Source: Macrostomum lignano | Taxonomy: Eukaryota | Direction of reading: 5' to 3' | Assembly: GCA_002269645.1 (NCBI GenBank) | Contig: NIVC01001814.1 | Coordinates: 94,751-158,750, forward strand | DNA: 64,000 bases | Part shown: positions 36,874 through 64,000 of the stretch, piece after piece | Layout: each line of letters starts with the position of its first letter | Position numbering within the stretch: position 1 is the stretch's first letter | Notes under the pieces: model-generated | What the model was told of the DNA's origin: nothing | The model's input: the letters and a program-made list of their open reading frames with translations, nothing else | Database searches by the model: none | Made by a program: the position numbers and the translations under genes

Positions 36874-39747
<2,874 letters not shown>

Positions 39748-39911
39748 AGCTGGCATCCCCAGCTCTGGCAGTCGGCCAATCCCAATTCGAGTCGGTTTCT
39801 ATTGGTCCTCGGACCCGAGCACTTCAACAAGTGTATTTAACGTATCTTTTTCTCCTTCCGCCCACTGCCGGCAAGAGAACTTCCAGCCAAGTCTGGGGAA
39901 ATTTGTTCGAC

Positions 39912-42900
39912 ATGAATTTTCGAGCAGCCATCCACTGCGTCATCTATCTGGTTGCGGTATCCGGTGCTGTCAGTGTAAGTGACGCGGCTCTTTCAGATTT
40001 AGAATTTTGAGTGCCAAAATTATAGGAATTTATTAAGCACCCTACTTTGCCTCAATGCTAACCGGCTTTTTCCGTTGTTTTGGCCACCTCTCCTCTCTGT
40101 CGCCCATAGTTTTATCGCCCTAACCCAAACTCTAACATGAGCTAAACAACCTGAGTTCGATTTCGCAAAAGGCCCGACATTAGTTTGGGTGTCGATTCGA
40201 GTCACACAAACACCACACGATGAGAAATCAGAGCCGTAAGTACACTCAGTGTGAGCGTGTTGCGTGCTTATTCAGGGGTTGCAATCGAGTCTCATTACGC
40301 CGGTAGTCCTTAGCCCTGCCCCTCCTCACTCCCTTGCCCCTCCTCACTCCCTTGCCCCTCCTCACTCCCTTGCCCCTCCTCACTCCCTTGCCCCTCCTCA
40401 CTCCCTTGCCCCTCCTCACTCCCTTGCCCCTCCTCACTCCCTTGCCCCTCTTCACTCCCTTGCCCCTCCTCACTCCCTTGCCCCTCCTCACTCCCTTGCC
40501 CCTCCTCACTCCCTTGCCCCTCCTCACTCCCTTGCCCCTCCTCACTCCCTTGCCCCTCCTCACTCCCTTGCCCCTCCTCACTCCCTTGCCCCTCTTCACT
40601 CCCTTGCCCCTCCTCACTCCCTTGCCCCTCCTCACTCCCTTGCCCCTCCTCACTCCCTTGCCCCTCCTCACTCCCTTGCCCCTCCTCACTCCCTTGCCCC
40701 TCCTCACTCCCTTGCCCCTCCTCACTCCCTTGCCCCTCCTCACTCCCTTGCCCCTCCTCACTCCCTTGCCCCTCCTCACTCCCTTGCCTTTTAGGAGGAA
40801 AGGAGGAGAAAGGAGGCCTTTTTTCTGCTTTCCTCCTTTCCTCCTTTCCTCACTCTCTTGCCCCTCCCCATTCCCTTGCCCCTCCTCACTCTCTTGCCCC
40901 TCCCCATTCCCTTGCCCCTCCTCACTCCCTTGCCCCTCCTCATTCCCTTGCCCCTCCTCACTCCCTAGCCCTAGCACTGTTTCCAACCTTGCGATCTTCG
41001 CCGCGAGGGCAATATTCTTTGCCGCTTCCAGCGTGAGCTTCTTCTCCACCAGGAGTCGGCCAGATTCCGCAGCGCCGCCCAAAAATTGAACAGCCGTCTC
41101 TCCATCTTTTTTCGCCTAAATATTTTGTAGTAGTAGGCACCGTGGCCCGAGCGAATGTACATTGCAATACGTACTTCTGGTAACTAGGCATGATGCTGGT
41201 GAGCATGCAGCCTGCTTACTTGACAACACAATGACAGGGGTCGGCAGAATTTTTTATATTTTAGTATTGTTGACTTCCTCCTCCGTCTCTCTCCTTTATC
41301 CCCTTGTCTATCTCTGCACGCGAATTCCTATATAAAAGTGTTGCTTTGCCGCTCCCTCAATTTCTATATCCAGCAGGGGGATGCCCGCCTTCTGCAAGCT
41401 CTCGGCAATTAGGCTAAGCCAAGGGAAAAAAAAGACAAAGTTTGGGCAGGGCATTTTCCGACAAAAATGTGAAGCTGCAATCTGCTCAAAAAGCAAACAG
41501 CCCGTGCTGAAATATTGCAAAGCAGGCCAGAAAAAGGGCCGCTGGTTTTTCTACAGGTGCGCCGATAGACGGACAGAAAAGCGGGGCAGAGGCGTGCGGG
41601 ACAAATTTGGAAATTTCCGTCCACTTTTCCCCCGCCTCGCTTTTCCTTGACTCAAAAAAAACATTTTCGAAGCGGCTTTGAGAACGAAGTAGGATCCATT
41701 TGTCTTTTGAAGAGAGGAACAAGAGGAACAAAGGCTGGGCCGATCTGAAACAACTCCTGCTCTCGTCCTTTGTGCCGCTTCCAAGATTTCACTAACAGAC
41801 TTCTTCAAGCTTCAATGCTCAATTGAATTTTCTCCTCCCCAATCAAAGCTCACTCTCTGCAATCGAATCTTACCCTCCTCAATTGAATCTTACCCTCCTC
41901 AATTGAATCTTACCCTCCTCAATTGAATCTTACCCTCCCAGAGCGAATCTCACTTTCCGAAATCGAATCTCACCCTCCCCAATCGAATCTCACTTTTCGA
42001 AATCGAATCTCACCCTCCCAGAGCGAATCTCACTTTCCGAAATCGAATCTCACCCTCATCAATCAAATCTTACCCTCCCCAATCGAATTTCACTCTCGTC
42101 AATCGAATCTCACCTTCACCAATCGGATTTCACCTTCACCAATCGAATCTTACCCTCATCAATCAAATCTCACCCTTTCTAATCGAATCTCACCCTCATC
42201 AATCGAATCTCACCCTCATCAATCGAATCTCACCCTTTCTAATCGAATCTCACCCTCATCAATCGAATCTCACCCTTTCTAATCGAATCTCACCCTCATC
42301 AATCGAATCTCACCCTTTCTAATCGAATCTCACCCTCATCAATCGAATCTCACCCTAATCAATCGAATCTCACCCTTTCTAATCGAATCTCACCCTCATC
42401 AATCGAATCTCACCCTCTCCAATCGAATCTCACCCTCATCAATCGAATCTCACCCTTTCTAATCGAATCTCACCCTCATCAATCGAATCTCAACCTCTTC
42501 AATCGAATCTCACCCTCATCAATCGAATCTCACCCTTTCTAATCGAATCTCACCCTCATCAATCGAATCTCAACCTCCCCAATCGAATCTCACCCTCTCC
42601 AATCGAATCTCAACCTCCCCAATCGAATCCCACCCTCGCCAATCGAATCTCACCCTCTCCAATCGAATCTCAACCTCCCCAATCGAATCCCACCCTCGCC
42701 AATCGAATCTAACTCTATACACGAACCAAATCTCACCCGTCATAATTGAATCTTAAACAAAAACACAACAGCATCATTATCAAAGTTATCGTTTGCATCT
42801 GATCCCATTCTGAATACTCAGCCATCTCTATTCACATTCAGGCCGCAGCCGACATAGATGCAGCTGACGCAGTCCTTCAAATCGTCGACGAACTGCGCGA

Positions 42901-45900
42901 CGTCGAAGCCGCCTGCCAGATGTCGCTGCTGGAGCGACGCCTCGACGACTGGCGCTCCGACAACCTCCCCGACTGCCCCGGCAGCTTCGACGGCCTCCTC
43001 TGCTGGCCGCCGCTCCGAAGCGGCGCCGAAATGGCAGCGGCCTGCCCGCCCAGCCTCTTCAGCGGCAACGGCACCGCGTCGGCCTGGCGCCGATGCCCAC
43101 CCGGGCCTCCCCCCGCGACTGTCAACGGCAGCGACAGCAAGGCGGCCGTCGTCGAAGCGGTTACCGACTTGACCGAATGCAAACCGAAGGATAAGAAAGT
43201 CTTTGCTCAAATTGTTGAGGAGGTGAGAAGCTGCTGAAAAGAGCTCCCCACTCCCTGCTACACCCGCTAATTTCCCCTTACTTCATTCGCCTCTCTTCTT
43301 CCTCACTCCCTCCCCACCTCACTCCCTGCCCCACCTCACTCCCTGCCCCTCCTCACTCCCTGCCCCACCTCACTCCCTGCCCCACTTCACTCCCTGCCCC
43401 ACCTCACTCCCTGCCCCACTTCACTCCCTGCCCCACCTCACTCCCTGCCCCACCTCACTCCCTGCCCCTCCTCACTCCCTGCCCCACCTCACTCCCTGCC
43501 CCACTTCACTCCCTGCCCCACCTCACTCCCTGCCCCACTTCACTCCCTGCCCCACCTCACTCCCTGCCCCACCTCACTCCCTGCCCCACCTCACTCCCTG
43601 CCCCCCTCACTCCCTGCCCCACCTCATCTTTTCTAGCTCGTACTATGTGCAGAGGAGCCGCGATCTGTCCTGAGCACGCAATCCAGGATCACGTGTGCCC
43701 TGCCCACCTGCTCACCTTGTGCTCGCCTGACAAAACCCCACACCCAGATTAATAACCTGGGCACAGATTAAATGTCTCAATACTAGAATGGCAGTAGCAT
43801 TGACATAGTCGAAGGAAATAGTTCACTGAATGCATGTCAGCATTCGGAACTTTGAAAGGAATCTAATAAATGCTAGTAATAAAATGACAGATCGTCACAA
43901 TTCTCCTACGAGTATACCTGGCAACTACTAATTACGAGCGTAGTACCTTTGCAGTTATACAAAGCGGTTGATTTAGTGGAAGACCTGTGACTGCTTTGCT
44001 TTCTAAAAGTTCTCTTTCTCAGAATTCTTAGAGCTACTCTAATGGCATCACAAAAAGGAAAAATTCAAATTCGCTTCGAAATTCGCAATTCGCTCTCAAA
44101 ATTTACTCTACAATCCGCCCTGTTAAACTTCCAAATCCGCCATCTAAAACTCCAAATCCACTTTCTAAAACTCCAAATCCGCCTTCTAAAACTCCAAATC
44201 CGCCTTCTAAAACTCCAAATCCGCCTTCTAAAACTCCAAATCCGCCTTCTAAAACTCCAAATCCGCCCTCTTAAACTCCAAATCCGCCCTCTAAAACTCC
44301 AAATCCGCTCTCTAAAACTCCAAATCCGCTCTCTAAAACTCCAAATCCGCCCTCTTAAACTCCAAACCCAACAACTGCAGATGCGCCGGACCAGCATCTC
44401 CAACAGCACGCAGCGCCAGCGATTGCTGCTGGAGAGGCTGATCTGCCGTCGTCGAGTGGCCGAGTTCTCGATTGGAGGCCGATCCGAGCAGAACGAATCC
44501 GTCTCGGCCTCCTGGCCGCGCTGCCCGCCCGAGTTCGATGTGGCCGTCTGCTGGCCGAGCGCGGAGGCCGGCGCCAGGGTCTCGGCGCCTTGCCCCGACT
44601 ATTTGAACGACGTCCTACGCCACCGGCGCGCCAGCCGGCTGTGCACCGACCGAGGCGTCTGGCAGCGAAGGCCAACCGAGTTTGACGGCGATGACGTTGA
44701 CGACAGCGGCGGTGCCGGCGGCGGCGGCTGGACCAACTTTAGCGAATGCCTCATCGAGCCGGCACCGGTGAAGATGCCGGCCGGCTCTGAGTGGATTAAG
44801 GTGAGCTGCGGCGGAGCGCTGAGAGCAGATGAGGCTGAAGAGGTGCTCAGTTAGTCACATGATGCAGGTGCGAGTGACACATAGAGCAGATGTGAGTGAC
44901 ACATAGAGCAGATGTGAGTGACACATAGAGCAGATGTGAATGACACATAGGGCAGATGTGAGTGACACATAGAGCAGATGTGATTGACACATAGACACAG
45001 TGACACATGTAAACAGTGTCACTCTGTAAAACAGTTTAATGCTCCCATGAAACGCCGCAGATGCACATCACCATTCTGGACGGCATCGGGTTCGCCGGCT
45101 TCGGCCTGTCGTTGGCTTCGCTGCTGACGGCCATCTGCATTTTGGCCGCTTTCAGGTGCGATCAGACTGCAAGCTGTTGTTGTGTCTTCTTAAGCTCTCC
45201 CGGGAGCAGAGAAGGCAGCAGAAGAAATTGCTTTCGAGTTCTGCTTTCCGATTGATTTGTTCAGGTGGCAGCGTGTGTGCAGTTACGATAGATAATCAAC
45301 TGCTAATCCTCATCGCAGCAATACTTTTGCCTTGCAGACGGCTGCATTGCCAGCGAAATGCCATTCACGTGAACCTGTTCGCCGCGTTCAGCCTTCGAGC
45401 TGGCAGGTACTTCGTGAACAAGCTCGCTCCGCTGGATGGCCAGGTGAATAAATCACTTCCCATTGACTGTTTGCTGAGCAAGAAATACTAGCGGAGATGC
45501 ACTAAGCCACTTACAGCCGCTTATAGCCACTTACAGCCACTTACAGCCACTTACAGCCGCTTACAGCCACTTACAGCCGCTTACAGCCACTTACAGCCAC
45601 TTACAGCCACTTACAGCCACTTACAGCCACTTACAGCCACTTACAGCCGCTTACAGCCACTTACAGCCACTTACAGCCGCTTACAGCCGCTTACAGCCAC
45701 TTACAGCCACTTACAGCCGCTTACAGCCGCTTACAGCCACTTACAGCCACTTACAGCCACTTACAGCCACTTAAAGCCACTTACAGCCGCTTACAGCCAC
45801 TTACAGCCACTTACAGCCGCTTACAGCCACTTACAGCCACTTACAGCCACTTACAGCCACTTACAGCCACTTACAGCCACTTACAGCCACTTACAGCCAC

Positions 45901-48900
45901 TTATAGCCGCTTACAGCCACTTACAGCCACTTACAACCACTTACAGCACATTACAGCCACTTGCAGTCACTTACAGCCACTTAAAACGCATGTAGTATTA
46001 CTGGAAATAAGGCAGCGGAGCGCCAAAGTCCGGGGTTCGATTCTGTACGGGTGTACGGACCTTGGCGTGAAGCTAATCGTCAGGCTAGGGCCAATCTCTT
46101 AAGGTGCAGAGGCAAGTCAGGTCCCCTGTACACCCAGCGTGCGCCTGCGCGTGCCCGTGCAGTGTAAGTGCTCAGGGGTCTGCGGGTGGGCATATGCATG
46201 CCCGCCTCCTCGCTAGCTGCGGGTCGAATTGTCTCAAAAGCTCTCAGATAGCTCGCTCGTATTGGATTGCTAATTTTTCTACGAATATGCAGACAGGACA
46301 TTGCACTGTGCAATTGGTGATAATAACATGAATATTCTGCCCCGAATGCAATTACCGAGATAGCAATTCTTAGGTTTATTAGTGGCAAAATGAAAATTTC
46401 TCTACCGATACCAGATAACCGAATAGCAAATGAAGCAAGCTGGAATGCCTTTCACACTGTGTTGATCTAAAATTTAACTTTAATCGATTTTGTCTATGGC
46501 AGCGGGCGGAGAATGTGGAGAGTGCTGTCTATGGCAGCGGGCGGAGAGTGTGGAGAGTGCTGTCTATGGCAGCGGGCGGAGAGTGTGGAGAGTGCTGTCT
46601 ATAGCAGCGGGCGGAGAATATGGAGAGTGCTGTCTATGGCAGCGGGCGGAGAATATGGAGAGTGCTGTCTATGGCAGCGGAGAATGTGGAGAGTGCTGTC
46701 TATGGCAGCGGGCGGAGAATGTGGAGAGTGCTGTCTATGGCAGCGGAGAATGTGGAGAGTGCTGTCTATGGCAGCGGAGAATGTGGAGAGTGCTGTCTAT
46801 GGCAGCGGGCGGAGAATGTGGAGAGTGCTGTCTATGACAGCGGGCGGAGAATGTGGAGAGTGCTGTCTATGGCAAGGGAGAATATGGAGAGTGCTGTCGA
46901 TGGCAGCGGGCGGAGAATGTGGAGAGTGCTGTCTATGGCAAGGGAGAATATGGAGAGTGCTGTCTATGGCAGCGGGCGGAGAATATGAAGAGTGCTGTCT
47001 ATGACAGCGGGCGGAGAATATGGAGAGTGCTGTCTATGGCAGCGGGCGGAGAATATGGAGAGTGCTGTCTATGGCAGCGGGTGGAGAGTGTGGAGAGTGC
47101 TGTCTATGGCAGCGGGCGGAGAATATGGAGAGTGCTGTCTATGGCAGCGGGCGGAGAATATGGAGAGTGCTGTCTATGGCAGCGGGCGGAGAATATGGAG
47201 AGTGCTGTCTATGGCAGCGGGCGGAGAATATGGAGAGTGCTGTCTATGGCAGCGGGTGGAGAGTGTGGAGAGTGCTGTCTATGGCAGCGGGCGGAGAATA
47301 TGGAGAGTGCTGTCTATGGCAGCGGGCGGAGAATATGGAGAGTGCTGTCTATGGCAGCGGGCGGAGAGTAGGAATGCATGTAACAGTCTGTCAGTTTTAG
47401 CTAGTCTCAAGTTTAACACACTGCACTTGAGTACTAATTTGATATTTGAAAAAACCTAAAACGAACTGCTGTTTTCAGATGCTGGCCTGCCGGGCGGACC
47501 AATCAGCGATGACCTTTGCTGTAGTTAGCAGCTTCACCTGGGTCTTTGTTGAGGCTCTGCACTTGCACTCGCTGATCTTTGTCAGTGCGCTATCGCACAA
47601 GACGAGGTCAACAAAGACCTACGCTGTTCTGGGCTGGGGTGAGCTGCCAACTTCCACGATAGCAATATTTCACAATGTTTTGAATTTGATTAGAGTTCTT
47701 TTTACAGATCCTCAGTTTCAAAGCTCCTCGGCTTCTATTCACATTTAACGTGTCAGTTTAAGCCGGGTTGGCTCAATTTCCTAATTTGCTCCAGAATTTT
47801 CTCCTTCTCAATAAGCACACGTAATTTCCTCTTTGAGGCATCGATTCGAAAGTCTCCTTTCGAAGAAAATCCGAGGATTAGATAAACGGATAAAGAAACC
47901 GAATTAATAGCTATTGAGGCTAACAGGGTATTAAGATCCCTTTGTAGGAGTTCTGCTGACTGGATTTTTTGTAGAGCCTTGACAGTGCTGCTCAGGCAGA
48001 ATCCAGGCCAAGCACTGTTTCATGCCTCCTCCCTAAAACGGCCTCACTAATAGGTGCGTCAGCGGGCATCACGGCAGTCTGGATACTGCTGCGAATTCTT
48101 TTTGACAACCGCGACTGTTGGAGACAGTTCAGGCCTCTCGGAGCGGACATCTGGCTGATCAACTCCTACCTTTGCGTGCTGGTTCTGGTGAGCAGAGCCA
48201 GTCAGTTAAATACCTTGTTAGTTAGTTCGGGGAGTCGATTAAAATCTGAAGCAATGCTGCCCATCCCGCTGGCTCCTGAGCACATACAAGCGCGCCAATA
48301 CTGTACGCAGGCGCGCACTCATGCGAGCTCGTACAAATGCTCATAGAGGGTGTACAGCTTTCTAATCATCAGGCATGTACACTTCACTGTCTTGGGGGCA
48401 CGGGAGCACGAGCTCCAAATGAGGGTGTTGGCGCTCGGAATCGAACCAAGGTCGTGGCGAGAAGTCAGACGTCTTCACCGTTACGTCGTAGAAAGTTCGG
48501 AAACTTAGATAAGCAGAAATCAGAACAGGACTCTTACAGGAGCATAAACAAATTTGGATTATCCTGCTGCAAATACTCGTATTGTTATCAAGAACACTAT
48601 ACCGGACATTTATTTTCTTTTTTCTTTTTTCTGTTGTCTTTTTCAGGTGAATGCAGTGTTATTTGTTCGAATTGTTCGAGAAATTTTCAAAAAATTAAGA
48701 CTGCAAACAGCAGCTATGGAAGCTACGCAGACTTATAGGTTCGTGCCTCGCTCTCGAGCTTCTACTAATGCACTTTTAATTAAGGATTAAAAGAAACTCT
48801 GAGTAAAGTGTTGAAGCAGGGAGTGAGGTGGCTGTAAAACTGAGGGGTGTTGGATGGAGGGGCGGGAGTGGCTACAAAACTGAGGGGTGTTGGAAAGAGG

Positions 48901-51402
48901 GGGTAGGGAGTGGCTACAAAACTGAGGGGTGTTGGAAAGAGGGGGTAGGGAGTGGCTACAAAACTGAGGGGTCTTGAAAAGAGGGGGTAGGGACTTGCTA
49001 CAAAACTGAGGGGTCTTGAAAAGAGGGGGTAGGGACTTGCTACAAAACTGAGGGGTCTTGAAAAGAGGGGGTAGGAAGTGGCTGTAAAACTGAGGGCTGT
49101 TGGAAAGAGGGGGTAGGGAGTGGCTACAAAACTGAGGGGTCTTGAAAAGAGGGGGCAGGGAGTGGCCGTAAAACGGAGGGTGTTGGATAGCGGGGCAGGG
49201 AGTGGCCGTAAAACGGAGGGTGTTGGATAGCGGGGCAGGGAGTGGATGGCTTGGGAGCATACAGAAGACATTACCATTCCATCGATTGCAGAAAGTTGTG
49301 GAAGTCCACATCAGTGCTTGTTCTGGTATTCGGGATCTACTACCTGATCTTCCTACCCGTGGCTATGATCCCGAAAGACCGTCTCGGAGCGAAACTGGAG
49401 TTTGTCCGACTCTACTACGAGCACTTTTTCAGCTCATTTCAGGTAGCTACTGAATCGAAACCTATTCAGTGAAGCTGAATAGCATTAAGGAAAGCAAATA
49501 ATTCTTAGAAATCTTGATAATCCATTCTTAACAACCCAGGGCTTCCTGGTAGCCCTGCTCTACTGCTTCGTGAATGCTGAGGTGCACCGGGAGCTGCGCG
49601 AGACTCTTCTGGCAACCCGTCTGGGCGCCTGGCTTTGCCGGCGCGGCGCTATCGGCGCTGCGAAGGCGCCGGAGGCTCGACGCTGCAGCGCCGAATGCCG
49701 GAGAACGAAGCGGATGCGCCTGATGCAGGATCAGCTGCAGCTGCCCGGACACGAGGATGTGAGCAGCGGTTTTTAATTGATCTGCACTTGTAGAAATCCT
49801 TTTAATATTTAATATTTTTCCTTGGAAACTATTTTAATAAATGATGCAGGGCTTGATTACATAATCATGCTGATGCTGTGTCAATGGTCTACGACACTTA
49901 CCTGCCGCAAACTGAATAGTATTGCAATTGATGCAATTCGTTTTCCAAGAAACGAAGTTTCCCATTCCTCCTACTCAAGTCGTCCTGGCTGGAATAAATA
50001 TCTGGACACGGAATGTGATGATAACCGCGTAGCTACCTGCGGCACGGGATAAAGGATATTGCCTGGGAATTTAGGGACATGAGCTGCTTAAAGAGAGGCG
50101 GAGAAAGGCAGGGCGCAGGATGTCTTTTAATCAGGCAACTGAACGCTAAACACGAACACTGATTCGAAGCCAGAGTATCCTGATTGGAGTCCTATTAATA
50201 AATACTCAGGTCTGCTAGGGTTGAGAAGGTTGAATTAAATTATTCGTCAACATCTGTTAGGCGTCCTTGCCATTTTTTAATTAAAATATTATCGAGTCAA
50301 AATCTGATCTTGAAGTATGCTTTGTTAAAAACCTGATCCTCAGCCTCCAGCAGGGGGTGGGGTGAGCAGTCGCAATCAAAATATCGTTTAAAAAATTGAT
50401 AAAAGATTTTTTCAGGAAATTCGAGATGGCTCGTAGCTGGGTGAGGTCTACGAATCGCATGGTCATATATTTAGACATCTCCAGCAATCTGTTCTGAAAT
50501 GGCAATGCTAAATGACCCTGTTTAGGAGTTTCTGCGCTCTTATGGGGCCAGCTTCTACGTCATCTCGATCTTTGATGAGTCTAACTTGAAGCCGGCATAA
50601 TAATCAAAACAAAGGAGCGCCTAAAGTTCTGGGCGCGCCTGTACTTTTAAACCAGAAGGCAGTTGAGTGCCTGCAGCGTCAGCAGCAGCACCTCCGGTAA
50701 AGACTGTTGAGCCGACTGGGCACGGATGAAGTCGTCGATGCAGCATCGAAGCGTCTCGCTTTGACGGGCCAATCAACCTTGGCAGACAAACTGCTAACAC
50801 GGTCTGGCAGCCTGCATGACAACTTAAATGTGGCGCTTGCTAATTATTATTTTTCGGTTTCGGCGACATCGTCCCACAGCCAGCGCATTCCGCTGACTCC
50901 TGAGCACATGCAAGCGCACCAATACTGTACGCAGACACGCACTCATACACACGCTCACACAGGGTGTACAGCGGCCCTGACTTTCTATTCGTCAGGCATG
51001 TACAGTCTTTGTGCCTTGGGGGCTGGCCTTATGGCTGTGAATTGCCAAGTTTCGCGGCCTGAGAGTCAGACGCCTTTACCGCAGAGCTCCTCTGACCCCG
51101 ACTGCGGACCTTAACCGAAGCACTACCCTACCAGCCCTAGCCTAAATTGTCAGCATTAAAATGCATTGGATGCGGTGCGGATGTACGGCCTCACAGGCCG
51201 TGTGAGTCTGTGTGAGTGCGTGCTCAAGGTCTGCTAATAAACCAAAATTGTTGCACAAAACTGAAACCCGCAGCTCTTCTTCATCGAACAGAAGCGTCAG
51301 AAGCAGCTGCAGACAGATGAAGCTGCAGACCTCAGCTACACAAATGAATCCATTGAGGAGGCCGGCTGTCTAGTCGTTCCGCTGGCTGATTCGGACGACT
51401 GA
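39912..51402 (+). CDS. Class B1 (secretin/PTH-receptor-like) GPCR with two tandem hormone-receptor ectodomains, ~649 aa
   Basis: Exons are 39912-39974 (signal peptide MNFRAAIHCVIYLVAVSGAVS), 42842-43222 (ECD1), 44381-44800 (ECD2), 45061-45155 (TM1), 45338-45443 (RRLHCQRNAIHVNLF, TM2), 47479-47638 (TM3 CR..WVFVEALHLH..LGWG), 48054-48187, 48647-48738, 49292-49442 (KLWKSTSVLVLVFGIYY..FFSSFQ), 49540-49758 (GFLVALLYCFVNAEV) and a tentative last exon 51274-51402. All introns are GT-AG and in phase. Confidence 0.9.
40312..40965. repeat. 18-nt pyrimidine-rich array (cactcccttgcccctcct) in GPCR intron 1
   Basis: Directly visible. A related 17-nt array lies at 43300-43625. Confidence 0.95.
40985..41125 (-). 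mobile_element. Degenerate LTR-retrotransposon gag remnant
   Basis: Minus strand with one 1-nt shift reads RRKKDGETAVQFL-AALRNLA, then RLLVEKKLTLEAAKNIALA. Both resemble conserved Ty3/Gypsy-type gag motifs (Q..GE...F...LR.LA; RLL.E..LTL..A...A). Confidence 0.5.
41860..42715. repeat. 20-nt tandem array (aatcgaatctcaccctcatc)
   Basis: Directly visible. It ends ~125 nt before GPCR exon 2. Confidence 0.95.
42842..43222 (+). CDS. GPCR exon 2: first, divergent hormone-receptor domain
   Basis: Six Cys: AACQ, DCPGSFDGLLCWPP, AACP, RRC and LTEC. Acceptor is ttcag, donor is gtgaga, phase 0-0. Confidence 0.85.
43300..43625. repeat. 17-nt tandem array (ctcactccctgccccac)
   Basis: Directly visible. Confidence 0.93.
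44105..44365. repeat. 21-nt tandem array (ctccaaatccgccttctaaaa) abutting the GPCR exon 3 acceptor
   Basis: Directly visible. Confidence 0.92.
44381..44800 (+). CDS. GPCR exon 3: second, canonical hormone-receptor domain
   Basis: Six Cys: LICR, RCPPEFDVAVCWP, PCPDY, LCTDRGVW and WTNFSEC. Acceptor is ctgcag, donor is gtgagc, phase 0-0. Confidence 0.9.
44872..45005. repeat. 22-nt tandem array (gagtgacacatagagcagatgt)
   Basis: Directly visible. Confidence 0.88.
45503..45983. repeat. 10-nt tandem array (acttacagcc), ~48 units
   Basis: Directly visible. Confidence 0.96.
46012..46190 (+). mobile_element. tRNA-derived SINE-like element, diverged copy
   Basis: ggagcgccaaagtccggggttcgattc head (a similar head is at 36730-36762), followed by aagtcagg..ctgtacaccc..gtgctcagg, which matches the other copies. 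Confidence 0.45.
46490..47368. repeat. 35/31-nt tandem array (tgtctatggcagcgggcggagaatatggagagtgc)
   Basis: Directly visible. Confidence 0.96.
48265..48490 (-). mobile_element. tRNA-derived SINE-like element
   Basis: The reverse complement has a tRNA-like head (ggtgaagacgtctgacttctcg..ccttggttcgattcc). The body matches 50888-51025. Confidence 0.55.
48825..49245. repeat. 42-nt G-rich tandem array in GPCR intron 8
   Basis: Directly visible. It ends ~45 nt before exon 9. Confidence 0.93.
50888..51100 (-). mobile_element. tRNA-derived SINE-like element
   Basis: Shares ctcctgagcacat.caagcgc.ccaatactgtacgcag with 48270-48320. The reverse complement has the head gcggtaaaggcgtctgactctc. Confidence 0.55.
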
Positions 51403-52692
51403 GCATCTCGATAACAGCGTGTTTTTTGCTTACAGCTGTAGACTTTATGCCTTCTCGGGCCCTGGGGAACGGATTCCCCTATCTATTTGATGCAACCGTT
51501 GAGCTGTAGGTGACTTTAATTGTTTTTTGCACCGATTTCCCTTTGATTAGCAGGTGGCTTCTATTTTCTGCAGAACAAAAACACACCCAGACGTACGTGG
51601 AAAAGTTTCATCATCTCAATCAGCAATACGATAAATATATTTATGCGTCTCAGCAGGGTGTGAAACTCATTTACAGCAGTGATTCTGTCTCTTATACGCC
51701 AAAAAATTACTTAGAGTTTAGAGCGGAGCTTTTATCTTTCACAAGCAATATGATTTTCCTTCCTAGCATTGGGGAGTTGGTCCCAGGAGAAGCTCTCGCA
51801 CGGGCAGAGCCAATTTCAAAAGAGCAGTCATCTTGCTGTGAGCAAACGATTGAACGTCGGCGTGAAGCAGCTGACTCACCAGGGACTTAAGAAAGAAAAA
51901 CTTGTTTCTTTAATCTTGCATGTTACCTATCACGCCATCATAAGGATCTAAGCTAGTTCTTTATTAGTATATAACTACTGAAAGTAGAGATGTTAGTAAA
52001 TTATAATAGCATGCGCAGCAGTGTAATATTGAGAATGCTTAGCATAGCATGACCCAAGTTGGTTGGTGCAAATGCATGTAACAGGGAGATGAGAAATAGA
52101 AAGAGGGTAAGAAGACAGTTTAGCCAAAACCGATGGCTGCACACAGGAGAAGAGAAATGAGAGGCTCGCCAGGTCAGGGGCAGAACAATACGAATCTCGG
52201 CTGGCTGTGCAGGGGGCGCATGAGCCTACAATGCGATTTCAATTCTTAGGCGCCTTCTTCACCAACCGCTTCGAATAGCAACAGAGGACAGGCAAGCTTG
52301 TTGAATAGAAAACGTGCTTGGATGACAGGCAAGCGGGCTAGGGGTAGGGGCCCAGCTGCCACACGTGAGACTGCAGAACACGTGCTGTGCTAGGCTGCAG
52401 CCGCTGCAGAATGCGCGCGCAAACAAAAATTTTACAATGCCGAGCGAGCGCAGAGGGGGGAGACGCTGGCTAGGCTGGGGCTTTTGAACACGCAAGACAA
52501 GAGCGGACTGGAACTCAAAGCAGTGGATAAGCAGAGCCAGCAGCGCTGAGGCTCAGTAAATTTTCCAGCTGAGATCACTTCTAAAAAACTGCATTGGCTC
52601 GGGAGTTATCAGCGTACGCCATCGGACATCCATTTTTAGCCATCGCTGCAGTCGGCGAAGCCTCGGGAAAGGCGGCCCGACGCGGACAAAGG

Positions 52693-54324
52693 ATGCGGCG
52701 GCGGGCAGGGCCGCTGCTTCCGCTGCTGTTGCTTCTGCTGCCGCTGCTGCTGCCGTCGCCGCCACCAGTAGCCGCTGTGGCCACCGCCATCCCCGCCGCC
52801 GGTGCCGACTCCATTCAGCTGGAAGAGGTTCCAGACCTGGACGACGAAGACAGCGAGATTGGCCTAGAGAGACGATCAAAAGAAGAGTTGGCACCGCCTC
52901 CCGAGGGTGGCGACCACAAGGAGCTGCTACGGCAGCTAAAAACCGTGCTGCACAAGGAGCTACAGCGTCGTAAAGCGGTCAGCCAGATCGAGAAGAAGGG
53001 TGCGCATCTTTCTGACGTTGTCAGCGGAGCCTCAAAGGTGGGCAAAGCTGTCTCTAAAGAGGACAAGAAGCACAAGAAGAAAAAGAAGAAAAAGAAGCAG
53101 AAAAACTTTTTTGCTACTCTGTGGCAGAAGCTGCGCAAAATATTGCCTCTGTGGGCCATCATTTTAATATTTTCCGGTATCGGTCTCATTTTTCTGCTGC
53201 TGCTAGCGCTGCTCATCTACTGCTGCTGTTGCCGCAGCAAGTCCAGCCGAAGCCGGATGCAGCCGCCCGCCCAGTCAGTGCTGTACAAAGACCTGGACCT
53301 GACCGGCGCGAACCGGCCCCAGTTCGGCATGATCAACTACTCGCTGGAGTACGATCTAAAGAAGGACAACCTCATAGTGACCGTATCCAACTGTCAGGAT
53401 CTGCCAAAAGGCCTGGACAGCTTAGACCCGTACGTGGTGGTGAGCATGATGAGCGAGAAGGACGAGGCTGCTGGCAAGACGCGCGGCACAAAGCCAAAAA
53501 CGTCGAAAACTGTGCGCAACAGCGGGAACCCGGTATTCAACTTCTCCTGCGTCTTCCCAGTAAAGAAGAAGTCAGAGCTCAAGGAGAAGATTGTCGTGTT
53601 CGAGGTATTCGATTGGGACTACGGAATCAAGCACGACATGGTGGCACGCAAAGTTGTCCACCTACGTCGCCTGGGCGAAGGTCTGGACGAGATTCTCGGG
53701 CGGACAGCCGACTTCTCGAAGGCGCTGCGCCGCGGCTTGCCACGCGACGAACGCGGGCCAGGCGACATCTGCCTGTCGCTGTACTACGCCGCCAAGAACA
53801 TGTCGCTCACCGTGAGCATCATCGAATGCAAGGGCGTCTTCGTCGCCAAGGGTCGCTCCGAGGAGCCGGACCTCGAGACCCTACCAAACACCTTTGTGCG
53901 CCTGAGCCTGCGGCATCCGCAGCTGAAACGCGAACAGGTGAAACGATCCAAGCAGGTCTCGGGCACCAGGAATCCCTACTTCAACCAGCAGTTCGTGTTC
54001 GAAGTTGGCGCTCGCGACATGCTGGAGACGTGCATCCTGCGCATCACTCTGGTGCACAAGACCGAGACCCTGCGGCTCAAGCGGCCCGTCGGCTCTCTGA
54101 AGCTGCACGCAGGCGCCGACCCCGACAGCCTGCCGCTGCTGCACTGGCGCGAGCTGCTGCAGACGCCGAACCGGGCGGTGGCCCGCTGGCACAATCTGAT
54201 CACACCCGAGGCCGAGGAGAGAAACCGCAAGATCAGGGAGAAGGAGGAGAAGCGCCGGCTGCAGGAGCTGCAGGAGGAGGCGGAGGCGGCGGCCGAGACC
54301 GCGGCGCCCTCGGGAAATCGATGA
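52693..54324 (+). CDS. Intronless synaptotagmin-like protein (signal peptide, luminal domain, TM, Cys cluster, C2A, C2B), 543 aa
   Basis: The first ATG is at 52693 (the track start at 52594 is a TTG). KQKNFF..KILPLWAIILI..IYCCCC resembles the Syt1 juxtamembrane/TM region. C2A has DPYV, NPVFN and VFDWDYGIKHD. C2B has GDICLSLYY, NPYFNQQFVFEV and HWRELL..RWHNL. AATAAA lies at ~54513. Confidence 0.88.
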   Translation: MRRRAGPLLPLLLLLLPLLLPSPPPVAAVATAIPAAGADSIQLEEVPDLDDEDSEIGLERRSKEELAPPPEGGDHKELLRQLKTVLHKELQRRKAVSQIEKKGAHLSDVVSGASKVGKAVSKEDKKHKKKKKKKKQKNFFATLWQKLRKILPLWAIILIFSGIGLIFLLLLALLIYCCCCRSKSSRSRMQPPAQSVLYKDLDLTGANRPQFGMINYSLEYDLKKDNLIVTVSNCQDLPKGLDSLDPYVVVSMMSEKDEAAGKTRGTKPKTSKTVRNSGNPVFNFSCVFPVKKKSELKEKIVVFEVFDWDYGIKHDMVARKVVHLRRLGEGLDEILGRTADFSKALRRGLPRDERGPGDICLSLYYAAKNMSLTVSIIECKGVFVAKGRSEEPDLETLPNTFVRLSLRHPQLKREQVKRSKQVSGTRNPYFNQQFVFEVGARDMLETCILRITLVHKTETLRLKRPVGSLKLHAGADPDSLPLLHWRELLQTPNRAVARWHNLITPEAEERNRKIREKEEKRRLQELQEEAEAAAETAAPSGNR

Positions 54325-58302: not shown

Positions 58303-59224
58303 CTCTGCTGCTGGCGTTACCAAATCTTCCTGCCGTCTCTCAAGTAGCGAGAGCGAGTTGACCAAATGCCTTATAGTTAACCAAAAATTTGTTCATGCCT
58401 TAGTTCGCGCATATAAATTTCCCTATCTGCCTTTCCCAGAAGACGCAAGTACCATAGACACTCGAGATGAATAATGAATAATTTATCAAAAACCTGCTAC
58501 TTGATTGAACAAATTTAACCGTAAAAACAGCGCATCAGCTTTGCATTTTTTCTGCGTTTGCTTTTTCGTCCCGGTGGTGTTTACAAGCAGAAGAGACTAG
58601 CTAATACGAGTACATGCGTACGAGTGGGTAACTTTCCTAAGCCTGTATATCCGTTTAGTTGATGGATGCAACCACAATTTTGGTTAGCCAACTGCAAATA
58701 TTTAAGTAAATCCAACACAGCTGTAAGACTAATTCTTCTATTCGCTAATCCAATGAACGGAAAGAATATGAAATATGAATAATACCTTTATACCAGAACA
58801 AATACGGAAAGTCTTGCCGCAGTCTAGGACTACTTTGGGCATGAAATTTCACCGAAACTCAAGTTTATTCCAGAGTTCCCAAAAATTCGATCATTTTGAC
58901 AGAAAACTCAAATTTTGAGAATAATTTCATTTGAAATCGGATCATCCGCACACCTGGCGCATTCGCGCCTGTCCCTGAAGTTGCCTGGGAAAGGCTGCCC
59001 AGCTTTGTGTAAATGCCCGTCGACAACTGGCACTTAAGAAGTGTTAATGCGGATGCGATTAGTGGAAATAATCCTTTGAAAGCGCAGTGCTTGGGCAGCA
59101 AAGTATTTGCGTCAAAGTAGCTGGACCGTCAGAAAACCTATAAATTAATCGATATTTTAGTCGAATATCTCCCTAGCTGACTGTTGTAGCAACAAACTGG
59201 TTACCATATTCAGACAACTAAAGC

Positions 59225-61114
59225 ATGCGCTACAGCCTAGCTCTGAGCGCCGCTGTTCTGGCGACACTGTCGCTTGCGGTTGGCGCTGCAATCAACTTAG
59301 CCGAGTGCTTTGCCAAGGACCGGGACGCCTGCATCAACTGCGTAGTGCAGTTTAGCAACGAGAGGTACGACGAATTCTGCAAGGCCTCGCCAACCAGCAG
59401 CATGTGCGGCAACGATGCTGGAAAAACCAACTACGTCAGCAACATTCAGAGATCCGCAAGTAACGGCTGCCCAGCTGCAGCAGCGATAGAGAAGGCAGCA
59501 CAAGCAGCAGAAACTACAACCGAAGCTCCGACAACTACCGAATCTCCAACAACTACGACCCAAGCTCTGACAACTACGACCCAAGCTGCGACAACTACGA
59601 CCCAAGCTGCGATAACTACGACCCAAGCTGCGATAACTACGACCGAAGCTCCAACAACTACAACCAAAGCTCCAACAACTACAACCGAAGCTCCAACAAC
59701 TACAACCAAAGCTCCGACAACTACAACCGAAGCTCCAACAACTACAACCCAAGCTCCAACAACTACAACCAAAGCTCCGACAACTACAACCAAAGCTCCA
59801 ACAACTACAACCGAAGCTCCAACAACTACAACCGAAGCTCCGACAACTACAACCAAAGCTCCAACAACTACAACCGAAGCTCCGACAACTACAACCAAAG
59901 CTCCAACAACTACAACCAAAGCCCTGACAACTACAACCGAAGCTCCGACAACTACAACCAAAGCTCCAACAACTACAACCGAAGCTCCGACAACTACAAC
60001 CAAAGCTCCAACAACTACAACCGAAGCTCCGACAACTACAACCAAAGCTCCAACAACTACAACCAAAGCCCTGACAACTACAACCGAAGCTCCGACAACT
60101 ACAACCGAAGCTCCAACAACTACAACCGAAGCTCCGACAACTACAACCAAAGCTCCAACAACTACAACCGAAGCTCCAACAACTACAACCGAAGCTTCGA
60201 CAACTACAACCAAAGCTCCGACAACTACAACCAAAGCTCCAAAAACTACAACCGAAGCTCCAACAACTACAACAAAAGCCCTGACAACTACAACCGAAGC
60301 TCCGACAACTACAACCGAAGCTCCGACAACTACAACCGAAGCTCCAACAACTACAATCGAAGCTCCAACAACTACAACCAAAGCTCCAACAACTACAACC
60401 GAAGCTCCGACAACTAAAACCGAAGCTCCGACAACTACAACCAAAGCTCCAACAACTACAACCAAAGCTCCAACAACTACAACCAAAGCTACGACAACTA
60501 CAACCGAAGCTCCCACAACTACTACTGAAGCGACGACAACAAAGCGTCCAGGACATTGTCGTGGACATGGTCATGGACATTGCCATGGACACGGTCATGG
60601 TCACGGTCATGGAAACGGTCACGGTCATGGACACGGTCATGGTCATGGACATGGTCATGGTCATGGACACGGTCACAGTCATGGCGATGATAATGACGAA
60701 GATGACAAGGACAAAGGAGGCAAGGGTAAAGGAGACAAAGGCAAGGGAAGTAAGGGCAAAGCAGGCAAGGACAGAGATGATAAGAACAGGGGTAAAAGAA
60801 GAGGATACGACAGAAGTTGGGTTGATGATGACAGTGACAGAGGCGACTGGCAAAAGCGTAGAGGCGGCTGGAGAAAGCGTAGAGGCGGCTGGAGAAAGCG
60901 TAGAGGCGGCTGGCAAAAGCGTAGAGGCGGCTGGCAAAAGCGTAGAGGCGGCTGGCAAAAGCGTAGAGGCGGCTGGAAAAGCGTAGAGGCGGCTGGAGAA
61001 AGCGTAGAGGTGGCTGGCAAAAGCGTAGAGGCGGCTGGAGAAAGCTTAGAGGCAGCTGGAGAAAGCGTAGCGGCAGGGGAGGCCGGTGAGGTTAAAGCTG
61101 AAATCAAGAATTGA
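59225..61114 (+). CDS. Secreted multi-block mucin-like protein: signal peptide, 6-Cys domain, TTTT[E/K]AP repeats, (GH)n, D/K/G-rich linker, GGW[RQ]KRR repeats
   Basis: Single 629-aa ORF with signal peptide MRYSLALSAAVLATLSLAVGA. Synonymous third-position variation occurs within the repeats (cca/ccg, cat/cac, ggt/gga). Confidence 0.85.
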   Translation: MRYSLALSAAVLATLSLAVGAAINLAECFAKDRDACINCVVQFSNERYDEFCKASPTSSMCGNDAGKTNYVSNIQRSASNGCPAAAAIEKAAQAAETTTEAPTTTESPTTTTQALTTTTQAATTTTQAAITTTQAAITTTEAPTTTTKAPTTTTEAPTTTTKAPTTTTEAPTTTTQAPTTTTKAPTTTTKAPTTTTEAPTTTTEAPTTTTKAPTTTTEAPTTTTKAPTTTTKALTTTTEAPTTTTKAPTTTTEAPTTTTKAPTTTTEAPTTTTKAPTTTTKALTTTTEAPTTTTEAPTTTTEAPTTTTKAPTTTTEAPTTTTEASTTTTKAPTTTTKAPKTTTEAPTTTTKALTTTTEAPTTTTEAPTTTTEAPTTTIEAPTTTTKAPTTTTEAPTTKTEAPTTTTKAPTTTTKAPTTTTKATTTTTEAPTTTTEATTTKRPGHCRGHGHGHCHGHGHGHGHGNGHGHGHGHGHGHGHGHGHGHSHGDDNDEDDKDKGGKGKGDKGKGSKGKAGKDRDDKNRGKRRGYDRSWVDDDSDRGDWQKRRGGWRKRRGGWRKRRGGWQKRRGGWQKRRGGWQKRRGGWKSVEAAGESVEVAGKSVEAAGESLEAAGESVAAGEAGEVKAEIKN

Positions 61115-62033: not shown

Positions 62034-62825
62034 CTAGCAGCATTTGCCACCGCCGGCGCCTGAAGCTCCGTCTACGTCATCCTCGCCAACAATGATGCCG
62101 GCGTTTCGGCCAGAGGAACGTCGACCAGCTGACGTTGCGCCCTCAGACCTTGACGTGGACGACCTAGACGAGGAGCCTGGGTTGGACGCCTCCTCGGCGT
62201 CGCGACGAGCCAGCATGTCGGCTGTCAGGCGAGCGAACGCCTCTTCTACGCCGCGGTTCAGCTTAGCGGATGTGCCGCAGTGCTTGGCGCCGACCGAGCT
62301 GGCGAATTCCTCGGCATTCGCTAGCGGTACATGACGATCGCGTTCGAGGTCAATCTGTAGGGAGACAGTTTTACCAAATAGCAATACGAACTGCAAACTG
62401 CTACCAAACAAAGACCGGTACAAATTATCTATCGTGGGGATAATATGCCCTCCCCGCAGTGTTCGCACCTTATTGCCAACTAGGTACAGTGTGACATCGT
62501 TGCCGCGAATCTTGCGCAGCTCCTTGACCCAGTTGCGCGCCTTCTCGAACGAATCCTCGTCAGTGATGTCGTAAACTAGAATAGCGCCGTCACTATCCCG
62601 ATAGTAGATTGGACCGAGGGCGTGAAAGCGCTCCTGCCCGGCCGTGTCCCAGATGTTCAGCGTCACCCGTCGGCCGGAGACGTTAAGTTTCTTAGAAAGG
62701 AACGAGGCCTGCACTGTGGTTAAGTGTTTGTCATTGAACTTATCCTCGACGTAGCGCAGCGCCAAAGAAGTTTTGCCGACACAGCCCTCGCCCAAGAGGA
62801 CAATTTTAAATTCTCTGTTGGACAT
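62034..62825 (-). CDS. RAB21: Rab21 small GTPase, 225 aa, 2 exons (62825-62469; 62354-62034)
   Basis: Rab21-typical motifs FKIVLLGEGCVGKTSL, HLTTVQASF, WDTAGQERFHALGPIYYRDS, GNK|ID, TSAK and C-terminal KCC. The 114-nt GT-AG intron is 62355-62468. Confidence 0.93.
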   Translation of the reverse strand: MSNREFKIVLLGEGCVGKTSLALRYVEDKFNDKHLTTVQASFLSKKLNVSGRRVTLNIWDTAGQERFHALGPIYYRDSDGAILVYDITDEDSFEKARNWVKELRKIRGNDVTLYLVGNKVRTLRGGHIIPTIDNLYRSLFGSSLQFVLLFGKTVSLQIDLERDRHVPLANAEEFASSVGAKHCGTSAKLNRGVEEAFARLTADMLARRDAEEASNPGSSSRSSTSRSEGATSAGRRSSGRNAGIIVGEDDVDGASGAGGGKCC

Positions 62826-64000
62826 TACTGCAACAGTTTTTTCAATCAAATTAGCAAATAACTGTGCTTTTTAGCCGGGTAAAAAATAATTAGAGAAAGC
62901 GAAAAGATAAAAACATACAAGGGGGGCCGAGATTTGAGGTGGTGGCGTGAGGAGGTCCGCTCTGTATTCTAATTATTAAGCTTGTGCGCGGTGCGCACAG
63001 AGCTTGGTCTTCTCGTCCCCAACTCCCTGCACCAGCTCTGGTTGGTGTGTCTGTATTTCTGCACACAAATTTTAGCGTCAGGCTTCAAGGCCTCGAACAC
63101 AAGCCCTCCTCCCGCTCCAGTGCCAGCCCCGCCACTTCTACTAGGACCTGCGACCCGTTTTCAGATAAGCAAACCGGCCGCCCCTTTCTCTCCGCAAATC
63201 AATGTACATTGGTTCTAATTTAAATTTCTAGTGTACATTGGATCAAATGTACACTCGTCGCGACTCGTACACACTGAACGAACGCACGGATCTCTTTTTC
63301 CCTTCACACAGTTTTACAAGCGTACGCTCGTATAAGGCTAGATTACGACTTTACGAGACGCGCGGCAATGAGTAAATGAATTTGTAATACCTTCAACACA
63401 TACGCATCGTACCATGTAATATTTAACGGATCGAATGACAGCGTTATAAAATTGTTCCAATTATTGTTCCAATTGTTCCAATTGTTCCAATGCAAGCCAG
63501 AAAGTAAAAAGGGGATTATTCACTAAGGAAACAAAAAACAATTCAGACTAAAGATTTTTTCGAGTTTATTTTGCTTGACACAGACTGGTTATAAAAAACG
63601 TTCGACAACAATGCACTTTATATTTTTATGGAGACAATTTTCAGCTTTTTAAACCGAGCTGTACTGATTGTTAGCGTTGTAAACAGCGAGCTGTTTTGCA
63701 CTGATAAGATAGCGGACGTCATACATAGCGATTACGGTGCGTATTTTTGAGTCTGGATTTACCAGAGAAAAACAACAAAAAAGTTGCTGCAATTAGCGCG
63801 AAATACGAGTAAATACGAGTATTAAAACAATCAGCGTCAATAGTACATGCACTTCTTGTACATGAAGTATGGTACTAATGTTATATAGTTAACGAACTCG
63901 CCAACCAACTGACAAGCATGCAACCAGCAGTGTTGTTCATCCATTTAAGACTGCAGTAGGTCTTTGCTAAGTTCTCCATTTACTGTTTAAGAATGATACA

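Follow-up and report, generated by a model that had tools for sequence, protein, structure and literature searches.

A PTH-receptor-like class-B1 receptor gene with two ectodomain exons in series

Structure of the receptor gene

The 64,000-nucleotide stretch of contig NIVC01001814.1 analysed here, which we call the window, contains a single intact gene for a class-B1 (secretin-family) G-protein-coupled receptor. A preliminary description of this DNA had reported a receptor with two hormone-binding ectodomains (ECD1 and ECD2) ahead of one seven-transmembrane (7TM) core. Using a hand-built model, for which the DNA at 39500-45600 and 47400-49860 was read and all plus-strand open segments were translated, we placed the gene at 39912-49776 on the plus strand, where it comprises 10 exons separated by introns that all conform to GT-AG. 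The joined coding sequence of 1839 nt contains no internal stops, ends in TAA and encodes a product of 612 amino acids, which consists, in order, of a putative signal peptide, two six-cysteine hormone-receptor (HRM) ectodomains encoded by separate exons and one 7tm_2 domain. The coordinates, phases and motifs of the preliminary description were all reproduced from the sequence, and the interval it had given (39912-45155) corresponds to exons 1-4 only.

Exon 1 (39912-39974, 63 nt) begins with the ATG at 39912, ends in phase 0 at the donor AGT/gtaagt and encodes MNFRAAIHCVIYLVAVSGAVS, a hydrophobic N-terminus of 21 residues (MNFR, a hydrophobic core and SGAVS) that represents a putative signal peptide. 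The first ectodomain, ECD1, occupies exon 2 (42842-43222, 381 nt, 127 codons, phase 0-0, cag/GCC...GAG/gtgag), and the second, ECD2, occupies exon 3 together with its stalk (44381-44800, 420 nt, 140 codons, phase 0-0, cag/ATG...AAG/gtgag). Exon 4 (45061-45155, 95 nt), which runs from phase 0 to phase 2, encodes transmembrane segment 1 (TM1) and lies inside the 7tm_2 match. The remainder of the 7TM core is distributed over six plus-strand exons: exon 5 (45338-45443) encodes intracellular loop 1 (ICL1) and TM2 (RLHCQRNAIHVNLF...), exon 6 (47479-47638) encodes TM3 and ICL2, exon 7 (48054-48187) encodes TM4, extracellular loop 2 (ECL2) and the beginning of TM5, exon 8 (48647-48738) encodes the end of TM5 and ICL3, exon 9 (49292-49442) encodes TM6 and ECL3, and exon 10 (49540-49776) encodes TM7, the C-terminal tail and the TAA stop. 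A shorter exon 5 that uses a donor at 45406 was rejected, as it breaks the frame, whereas the donor at 45443 gives an exon 5/6 junction that aligns without gaps to the homologue from Macrostomum lignano discussed below. An AATAAA motif on the plus strand at 49836-49841, 60 nt past the stop, is a candidate polyadenylation signal on the basis of its motif.

The receptor gene is embedded in repetitive DNA. Minisatellites, whose periods of 10-60 nt recur 6-48 times at 84-95% matches, are found in five of its nine introns: introns 1 (40317-40971 and 41834-42710), 2 (43301-43626 and 44112-44366) and 5 (45505-45983 and 46491-47367) hold two arrays each, and introns 3 (44856-44995) and 8 (48828-49245) hold one. 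The arrays of introns 1 and 2 are built from related C/T-rich units, TGCCCCTCCTCACTCCCT and CCTCACTCCCTGCCCCA, and minisatellites are similarly dense throughout the 64-kb window. Upstream of the gene lies a (TAAC)n microsatellite at 38000-39747 (approximately 437 copies, 98% matches), which ends 165 nt before the start codon; the unique sequence left for a promoter is very short. We considered whether this array could be a telomere and rejected that assignment, as the array is a microsatellite of 1.7 kb that lies immediately 5' of the gene.

Two ectodomains on separate exons

The peptides of the two ectodomain exons were each scored alone against the Pfam HRM profile, for which the curated cut-off is 26.2 bits. 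ECD2 scored 57.2 bits over profile positions 3-63 of 66, and ECD1 scored 28.9 bits over positions 4-45. Each exon encodes exactly six cysteines, and the spacing from the second to the fifth (9/14/17 for C2-C3-C4-C5) is the same in both. ECD2 contains the motifs EFDVAVCWP, CPDY, GVW and WTNFSEC, and ECD1 contains SFDGLLCWP and CPPS, the latter without the tyrosine, and has no tryptophan after its fifth cysteine. When aligned to canonical ectodomains, ECD1 retains the aspartate, C-W, C-P, R-x-C and glycine but is missing the G-x-W tryptophan, the CPxY tyrosine and the WxNY tryptophan. The core ectodomain motifs of class-B1 receptors comprise an aspartate before C-W, C-W itself, C-P and G-x-W (PMC7200681); all four are present in ECD2 (FDVAVCW, CP, GVW), and ECD1 alone lacks G-x-W. 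Over the core from C1 to C6 the two domains are 31.5% identical. Each exon carries an N-terminal helix, a core and a stalk, with 14 residues after C6 in one exon and 17 in the other, and ECD1 additionally carries two N-glycosylation sequons.

Several further observations bear on whether ECD1 is a genuine domain. A tblastn search of the window with fish PTH1R and insect ectodomains detected ECD1 at approximately 5e-8 and ECD2 at approximately 5e-15 (6e-15 for ECD2 with the fish query) and found nothing else in the 64 kb, neither a further HRM exon nor a second receptor copy. The GC content at third codon positions exceeds that at second positions in ECD1 (0.77 versus 0.53) and in ECD2 (0.83 versus 0.58), a codon-position periodicity like that of the other exons. 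In the AlphaFold2 (AF2) model of the full-length protein, both ectodomains show a long N-terminal helix and beta-hairpins, and residues 31-110, within ECD1, have a predicted local distance difference test (pLDDT) score of 70-87. ECD1 modelled alone gave a pLDDT of 83.5 and a predicted template modelling (pTM) score of 0.71; in this model a helix spans residues 2-39 and the strands occupy 63-67, 80-84 and 107-109, and a Foldseek comparison of this model with the PDB returned class-B1 ectodomains for all of the best 50 matches, with PTH1R first. ECD1 is thus predicted as a class-B1-like ectodomain, in a model built on class-B1 alignments. The retention of all six cysteines, the GC periodicity, the confident HRM-like model and the Smith-Waterman pairing with the first ectodomain of the M. 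lignano homologue described below together indicate that ECD1 has been kept as coding sequence.

Taken together, these results support the preliminary description in its central claim that two complete HRM ectodomains, each with six cysteines and each on its own symmetric phase-0 exon, precede one 7TM core, with Pfam matches above the cut-off in both ectodomain exons and a 7tm_2 match of 176.9 bits. They likewise sustain its view of ECD1 as a divergent copy that has FDGLLCWP and has lost the G-x-W tryptophan and the CPxY tyrosine. We conclude that ECD1 is a genuine but degenerate HRM domain and that ECD2 is canonical.

The best match to the protein overall was an uncharacterised M. lignano protein of 583 amino acids (UniProt A0A1I8IK20), annotated as a 'G_PROTEIN_RECEP_F2_4 domain-containing protein'. 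Like the window protein, A0A1I8IK20 has two HRM stretches by Pfam, and the alignment of the two proteins runs collinearly from ECD1 over the linker and ECD2 into the 7TM core, at 36-45% identity. The inter-domain linker aligns without gaps, and the distance from C6 of ECD1 to C1 of ECD2 is 36 residues in the window protein and 34 in A0A1I8IK20. Within a library of 1.84 billion proteins, the closest protein was 38% identical. The identity to A0A1I8IK20 is low enough that the two may be paralogues or may come from distant species.

We also compared the individual ectodomains of the two proteins. In Smith-Waterman alignments, window ECD1 scored 122 against M. lignano ECD1, 98 against M. lignano ECD2 and 87 against its own ECD2. 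For window ECD2, the best score among double-ectodomain proteins was with M. lignano ECD2 (165), although the top score overall was with a single-ectodomain Ischnura domain (175). The four quoted scores of window and M. lignano domains were all at least 9 standard deviations above shuffles. These comparisons lend moderate support to positional orthology of ECD1, and it is most parsimonious to assume one duplication that predates the separation of the window and M. lignano lineages, likewise with moderate support from the sequences. The ECD1 of A0A1I8IK20 still has the G-x-W tryptophan (DGRW) that window ECD1 does not, which makes the loss of this residue specific to the window lineage.

Receptor family and related architectures

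We next consider the family to which the receptor belongs. The Pfam 7tm_2 (PF00002) match covers residues 297-538 and profile positions 7-250 of 250. Foldseek with the full AF2 model placed PTH1R first, with structures of PTH1R, GLP1R and CTR at E values of approximately 1e-19. Among PDB sequence matches, PTH1R was best at approximately 200 bits, followed by GIPR, VIPR1, PTH2R and GCGR, and calcitonin-type receptors were absent from the 60 best. When the 7TM core was used alone, the best named homologues were fish PTH1R and PTH2R at 36-38% identity, and the top-scoring matches that we looked up included the M. lignano protein, an Ischnura 'VIPR2-like' protein, mollusc proteins annotated as 'PTH/PTHrP receptor-like' or 'secretin receptor-like', a shrimp 'secretin receptor-like' protein and vertebrate PTH receptors. 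Vertebrate PTH1R and PTH2R and the PTH-receptor-like ('cluster B') receptors of lophotrochozoans and arthropods are the best sequence and structure matches for both the 7TM core and ECD2. Whereas the window protein has two HRM stretches, phmmer showed only one in each of the PTHR-like matches that were checked (P0005, P0007, P0036 and others). In a neighbour-joining tree built on 262 7TM columns, the window and M. lignano proteins paired with 100% bootstrap support on a branch beside the PTHR/secretin/glucagon and arthropod groups and well separated from the calcitonin/CLR and PDFR clades. Schistosoma mansoni provides an existing flatworm record of a PTHR-like receptor that has an HRM domain (PMC3261222). 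Based on these matches, the window gene appears to be PTH-receptor-like, as a provisional subfamily placement, and its ligand would be a peptide hormone.

An exhaustive phmmer search of 1.84 billion representative proteins with ECD1 and ECD2 as the query returned 51 proteins, several of which had multiple matched stretches, and these were then scanned with Pfam. Multiple HRM stretches were found in teleosts, with four in Stegastes partitus (the XP_008287491 group, annotated 'CGRP type 1 receptor') and two in Centroberyx gerrardi (annotated CGRP type 1 receptor). In arthropods, two stretches were found in calcitonin-type receptors of Ischnura, Cloeon, Penaeus and Trichonephila and in a dipteran Condylostylus protein annotated as 'PDF receptor'. 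The search also returned P0035, a 352-residue product of a Logan contig outside the window, which has two HRM stretches (Pfam, 83 bits), an apparent single hydrophobic segment and no 7TM core; it may be an HRM-only protein, a single-pass protein or an incomplete contig.

The teleost calcitonin/CGRP-type receptors share the layout of the window gene in that several complete HRM domains stand in series before one 7tm_2, but they sit in the CLR/CTR clade, which is a different class-B1 subfamily. By eye, in a comparison that was not quantified, the teleost repeats resemble one another much more closely than the two window ectodomains do, which suggests a younger duplication. A pufferfish calcitonin receptor is reported to have tandem hormone-binding domains as well, in a 2007 paper by Nag and colleagues that two other papers cite. 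The arthropod calcitonin-type receptors and the Condylostylus PDF receptor have the same HRM-HRM-7tm_2 order as the window gene, and in the former the distal HRM appears by eye to be shorter and more diverged and the proximal one canonical, which parallels ECD1 and ECD2. These arthropod receptors group in calcitonin/'cluster A'-like and PDFR clades, apart from the window gene. Our literature searches turned up no discussion of the double domain of the arthropod receptors, and double domains of any kind go unmentioned in Veenstra (2014), Cardoso (2014, 2020), Sekiguchi (2018) and a 2021 preprint.

Both the 7TM tree and the ectodomain scores speak against common descent of the window duplication with those of fishes or arthropods. 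Fish and arthropod ectodomains give lower scores with window ECD1 and ECD2 than do single-ectodomain PTHR-like domains or the lineage of the respective other window ectodomain. The other multi-HRM receptors lie in the calcitonin/CLR and PDFR clades, away from the window gene, whose duplication was therefore independent. On these comparisons, independent duplications of the HRM exon have occurred several times, and the window gene is the PTHR-like, flatworm-type case. The author of the preliminary description knew of no described receptor like this one, having made no search, and had proposed that flatworm and spiralian proteomes be searched for the architecture. Public databases contain HRM-HRM-7tm_2 proteins from teleosts and arthropods, including a dipteran PDFR, as well as A0A1I8IK20, and even a protein with four HRM stretches ahead of 7tm_2, which means that the layout is in part already common or described and that the statement does not hold. 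The layout is already known in fishes, arthropods and M. lignano, and the window gene is unusual within its own subfamily rather than a new type of receptor.

Three further putative coding segments lie downstream of the receptor gene. An open segment of 579 amino acids on the plus strand at 52585-54321 has two C2 stretches (Pfam C2, 92.6 bits) and looks like a synaptotagmin-like gene, approximately 3 kb from the receptor and apparently contained in one large exon. On the minus strand, an exon at 62037-62870 covers the greater part of a small GTPase of the Rab21 type (Pfam Ras, 175 bits), for which the best database matches were vertebrate and arthropod Rab21 at 75-80% identity. Between them, a plus-strand open segment of 630 amino acids at 59222-61111 starts like a signal peptide (MRYSLALSAAVLATLSLAVGA), continues with a cysteine-containing head and a long threonine-rich repeat (TTTTEAP/KAP) and ends in His/Gly- and Lys/Gly-rich tails. 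No Pfam match was found for this product, which looks mucin-like.

Interpretation of the double ectodomain

Based on these findings, we consider it probable that the gene encodes a constitutive double-ectodomain, PTHR-like receptor that arose by tandem duplication of an ectodomain exon, in which ECD2 captures the peptide and ECD1 is a conserved accessory domain. The identical C2-C5 spacing and the presence of a helix, a core and a stalk in both exons point to the tandem duplication. The ancestral ectodomain would have occupied one symmetric phase 0-0 exon that encoded an N-terminal helix, a three-disulfide core and a stalk; this exon would have been duplicated in tandem, and both copies would now be spliced into the mRNA, giving a product in which one 7TM bundle is preceded by two consecutive HRM domains. 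Being canonical, membrane-proximal and at a normal distance from TM1, ECD2 would capture the C-terminal part of the ligand, whose N-terminus would then activate the 7TM core. ECD1, in the distal position, has kept the disulfide scaffold and lost the second tryptophan, and it may be an accessory domain that modulates affinity or selectivity or that binds something else.

The preliminary description had presented the ectodomain exons as interchangeable and the receptor as possibly ligand-switchable. Its further ideas of ECD1 as an auto-inhibitory, RAMP-like or shed module are speculative. Its observation on frame stands: exon 1 ends and exon 4 begins in phase 0, and both ectodomain exons are 0-0, such that mRNAs with both ectodomains, with ECD1 skipped or with ECD2 skipped are all in frame to the stop. 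What does not follow is the use of these combinations. An internal exon that is duplicated in tandem survives only if it is symmetric, and the junctions that flank a duplicated 0-0 ectodomain exon can only be of phase 0. The phase symmetry is therefore a by-product of the duplication and provides no independent evidence of alternative use. Mutually exclusive exon pairs are usually equal in length and much more similar to each other, although this is not a strict rule, and here the two exons differ in length (381 versus 420 nt) at the low core identity given above. Constitutive inclusion of both ectodomains is suggested by these unequal lengths, by the identity of approximately 31% and by the gap-free alignment of the linker to A0A1I8IK20, which has both ectodomains.

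If the exons nevertheless behaved as cassettes or as a mutually exclusive pair, the gene would yield ECD1-only, ECD2-only and/or double receptors that differ in ligand selectivity. All four junctions would permit this, the N-terminal helix of each ectodomain and its similar stalk would let either one adjoin TM1, and the polypyrimidine tracts at the acceptors of exons 3 and 4 are weak. We regard such switching as unlikely, as the phase symmetry that permits it is needed by any surviving tandem duplication, intron 2 at 1158 nt is long enough that no steric exclusion would operate, the two domains follow one another in the M. lignano model across a linker of conserved length, and ECD1 is without core residues that would be expected in a stand-alone ligand-capture domain. 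A more specific form, in which the ectodomain exons alternate by tissue or stage such that one 7TM core is served by either capture domain, with ECD1 perhaps also acting as a soluble decoy, is distinctly unlikely; were it true, a class-B1 receptor would possess a genetically encoded ligand switch. The decoy idea also has a version of its own, in which exons 1-2 additionally or instead produce a soluble secreted HRM protein through retention of intron 2 or polyadenylation within it. Read-through of the exon-2 donor (43223-43234) encodes VRSC and then meets a stop after four codons, and intron 2 has AATAAA-type motifs in its unique portion at approximately 43866-43880, but any intron would be expected to contain early stops and such motifs by chance, and the donor (GAG/gtgaga) is strong, which makes this outcome highly improbable.

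The loss of conserved residues raises the opposite concern, that ECD1 is a decaying duplicate or pseudo-exon that is skipped or inert and that the working receptor is a conventional one with ECD2 as its single ectodomain. In addition to the missing G-x-W, CPxY and WxNY residues, the Pfam score of ECD1 is just over the cut-off with a partial match, and its exon is GC-rich, with other frames that also remain open for more than 100 codons, such that the open reading frame alone is weak evidence. We consider decay of this extent very unlikely, as the six cysteines, the aspartate, C-W, C-P and R-x-C have been kept despite the divergence from ECD2, the exon has consensus splice sites and a GC3 above GC2 as in other exons, and ECD1 has a homologous first ectodomain in M. 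lignano and a confidently predicted fold.

Several points weigh against the constitutive double-ectodomain reading and its dating. The inclusion of both exons in the mRNA is inferred from the homologue, and A0A1I8IK20 is an unreviewed gene model with errors, namely in the TM1 region, in a missing TM4 and in an insertion before TM7. The identity of window ECD1 is 34.5% to M. lignano ECD1 and 37.7% to M. lignano ECD2, and M. lignano ECD1 scores about equally against its own ECD2. The alignments behind the AF2 models consisted of class-B1 receptors, such that the models lean to that fold. The lost G-x-W tryptophan and a Pfam match confined to the initial two thirds of the HRM profile make relaxed constraint on ECD1, or its decay, possible. 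Finally, the window gene is not nested in the vertebrate PTHR clade of the neighbour-joining tree, and the label 'PTHR-like' follows the ranking of best hits.

Class-B1 receptors are textbook machines of the 'one ectodomain, one peptide' kind, and lineages with additional ectodomains offer natural experiments on the possible contributions of a second capture domain, for instance to affinity, selectivity, co-receptor mimicry or auto-inhibition. The window gene is a candidate for the deorphanisation of flatworm peptide receptors, and with one exon per ectodomain its structure is unusually clean, such that constructs lacking ECD1 or ECD2 and isoform assays are easily designed. To the fish, arthropod and dipteran receptors the locus adds an independent, PTH-receptor-like and probably flatworm case. 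The value of this case is comparative, in that it leaves knowledge of the family unchanged and illustrates that the HRM exon has been duplicated recurrently and convergently among class-B1 receptors.

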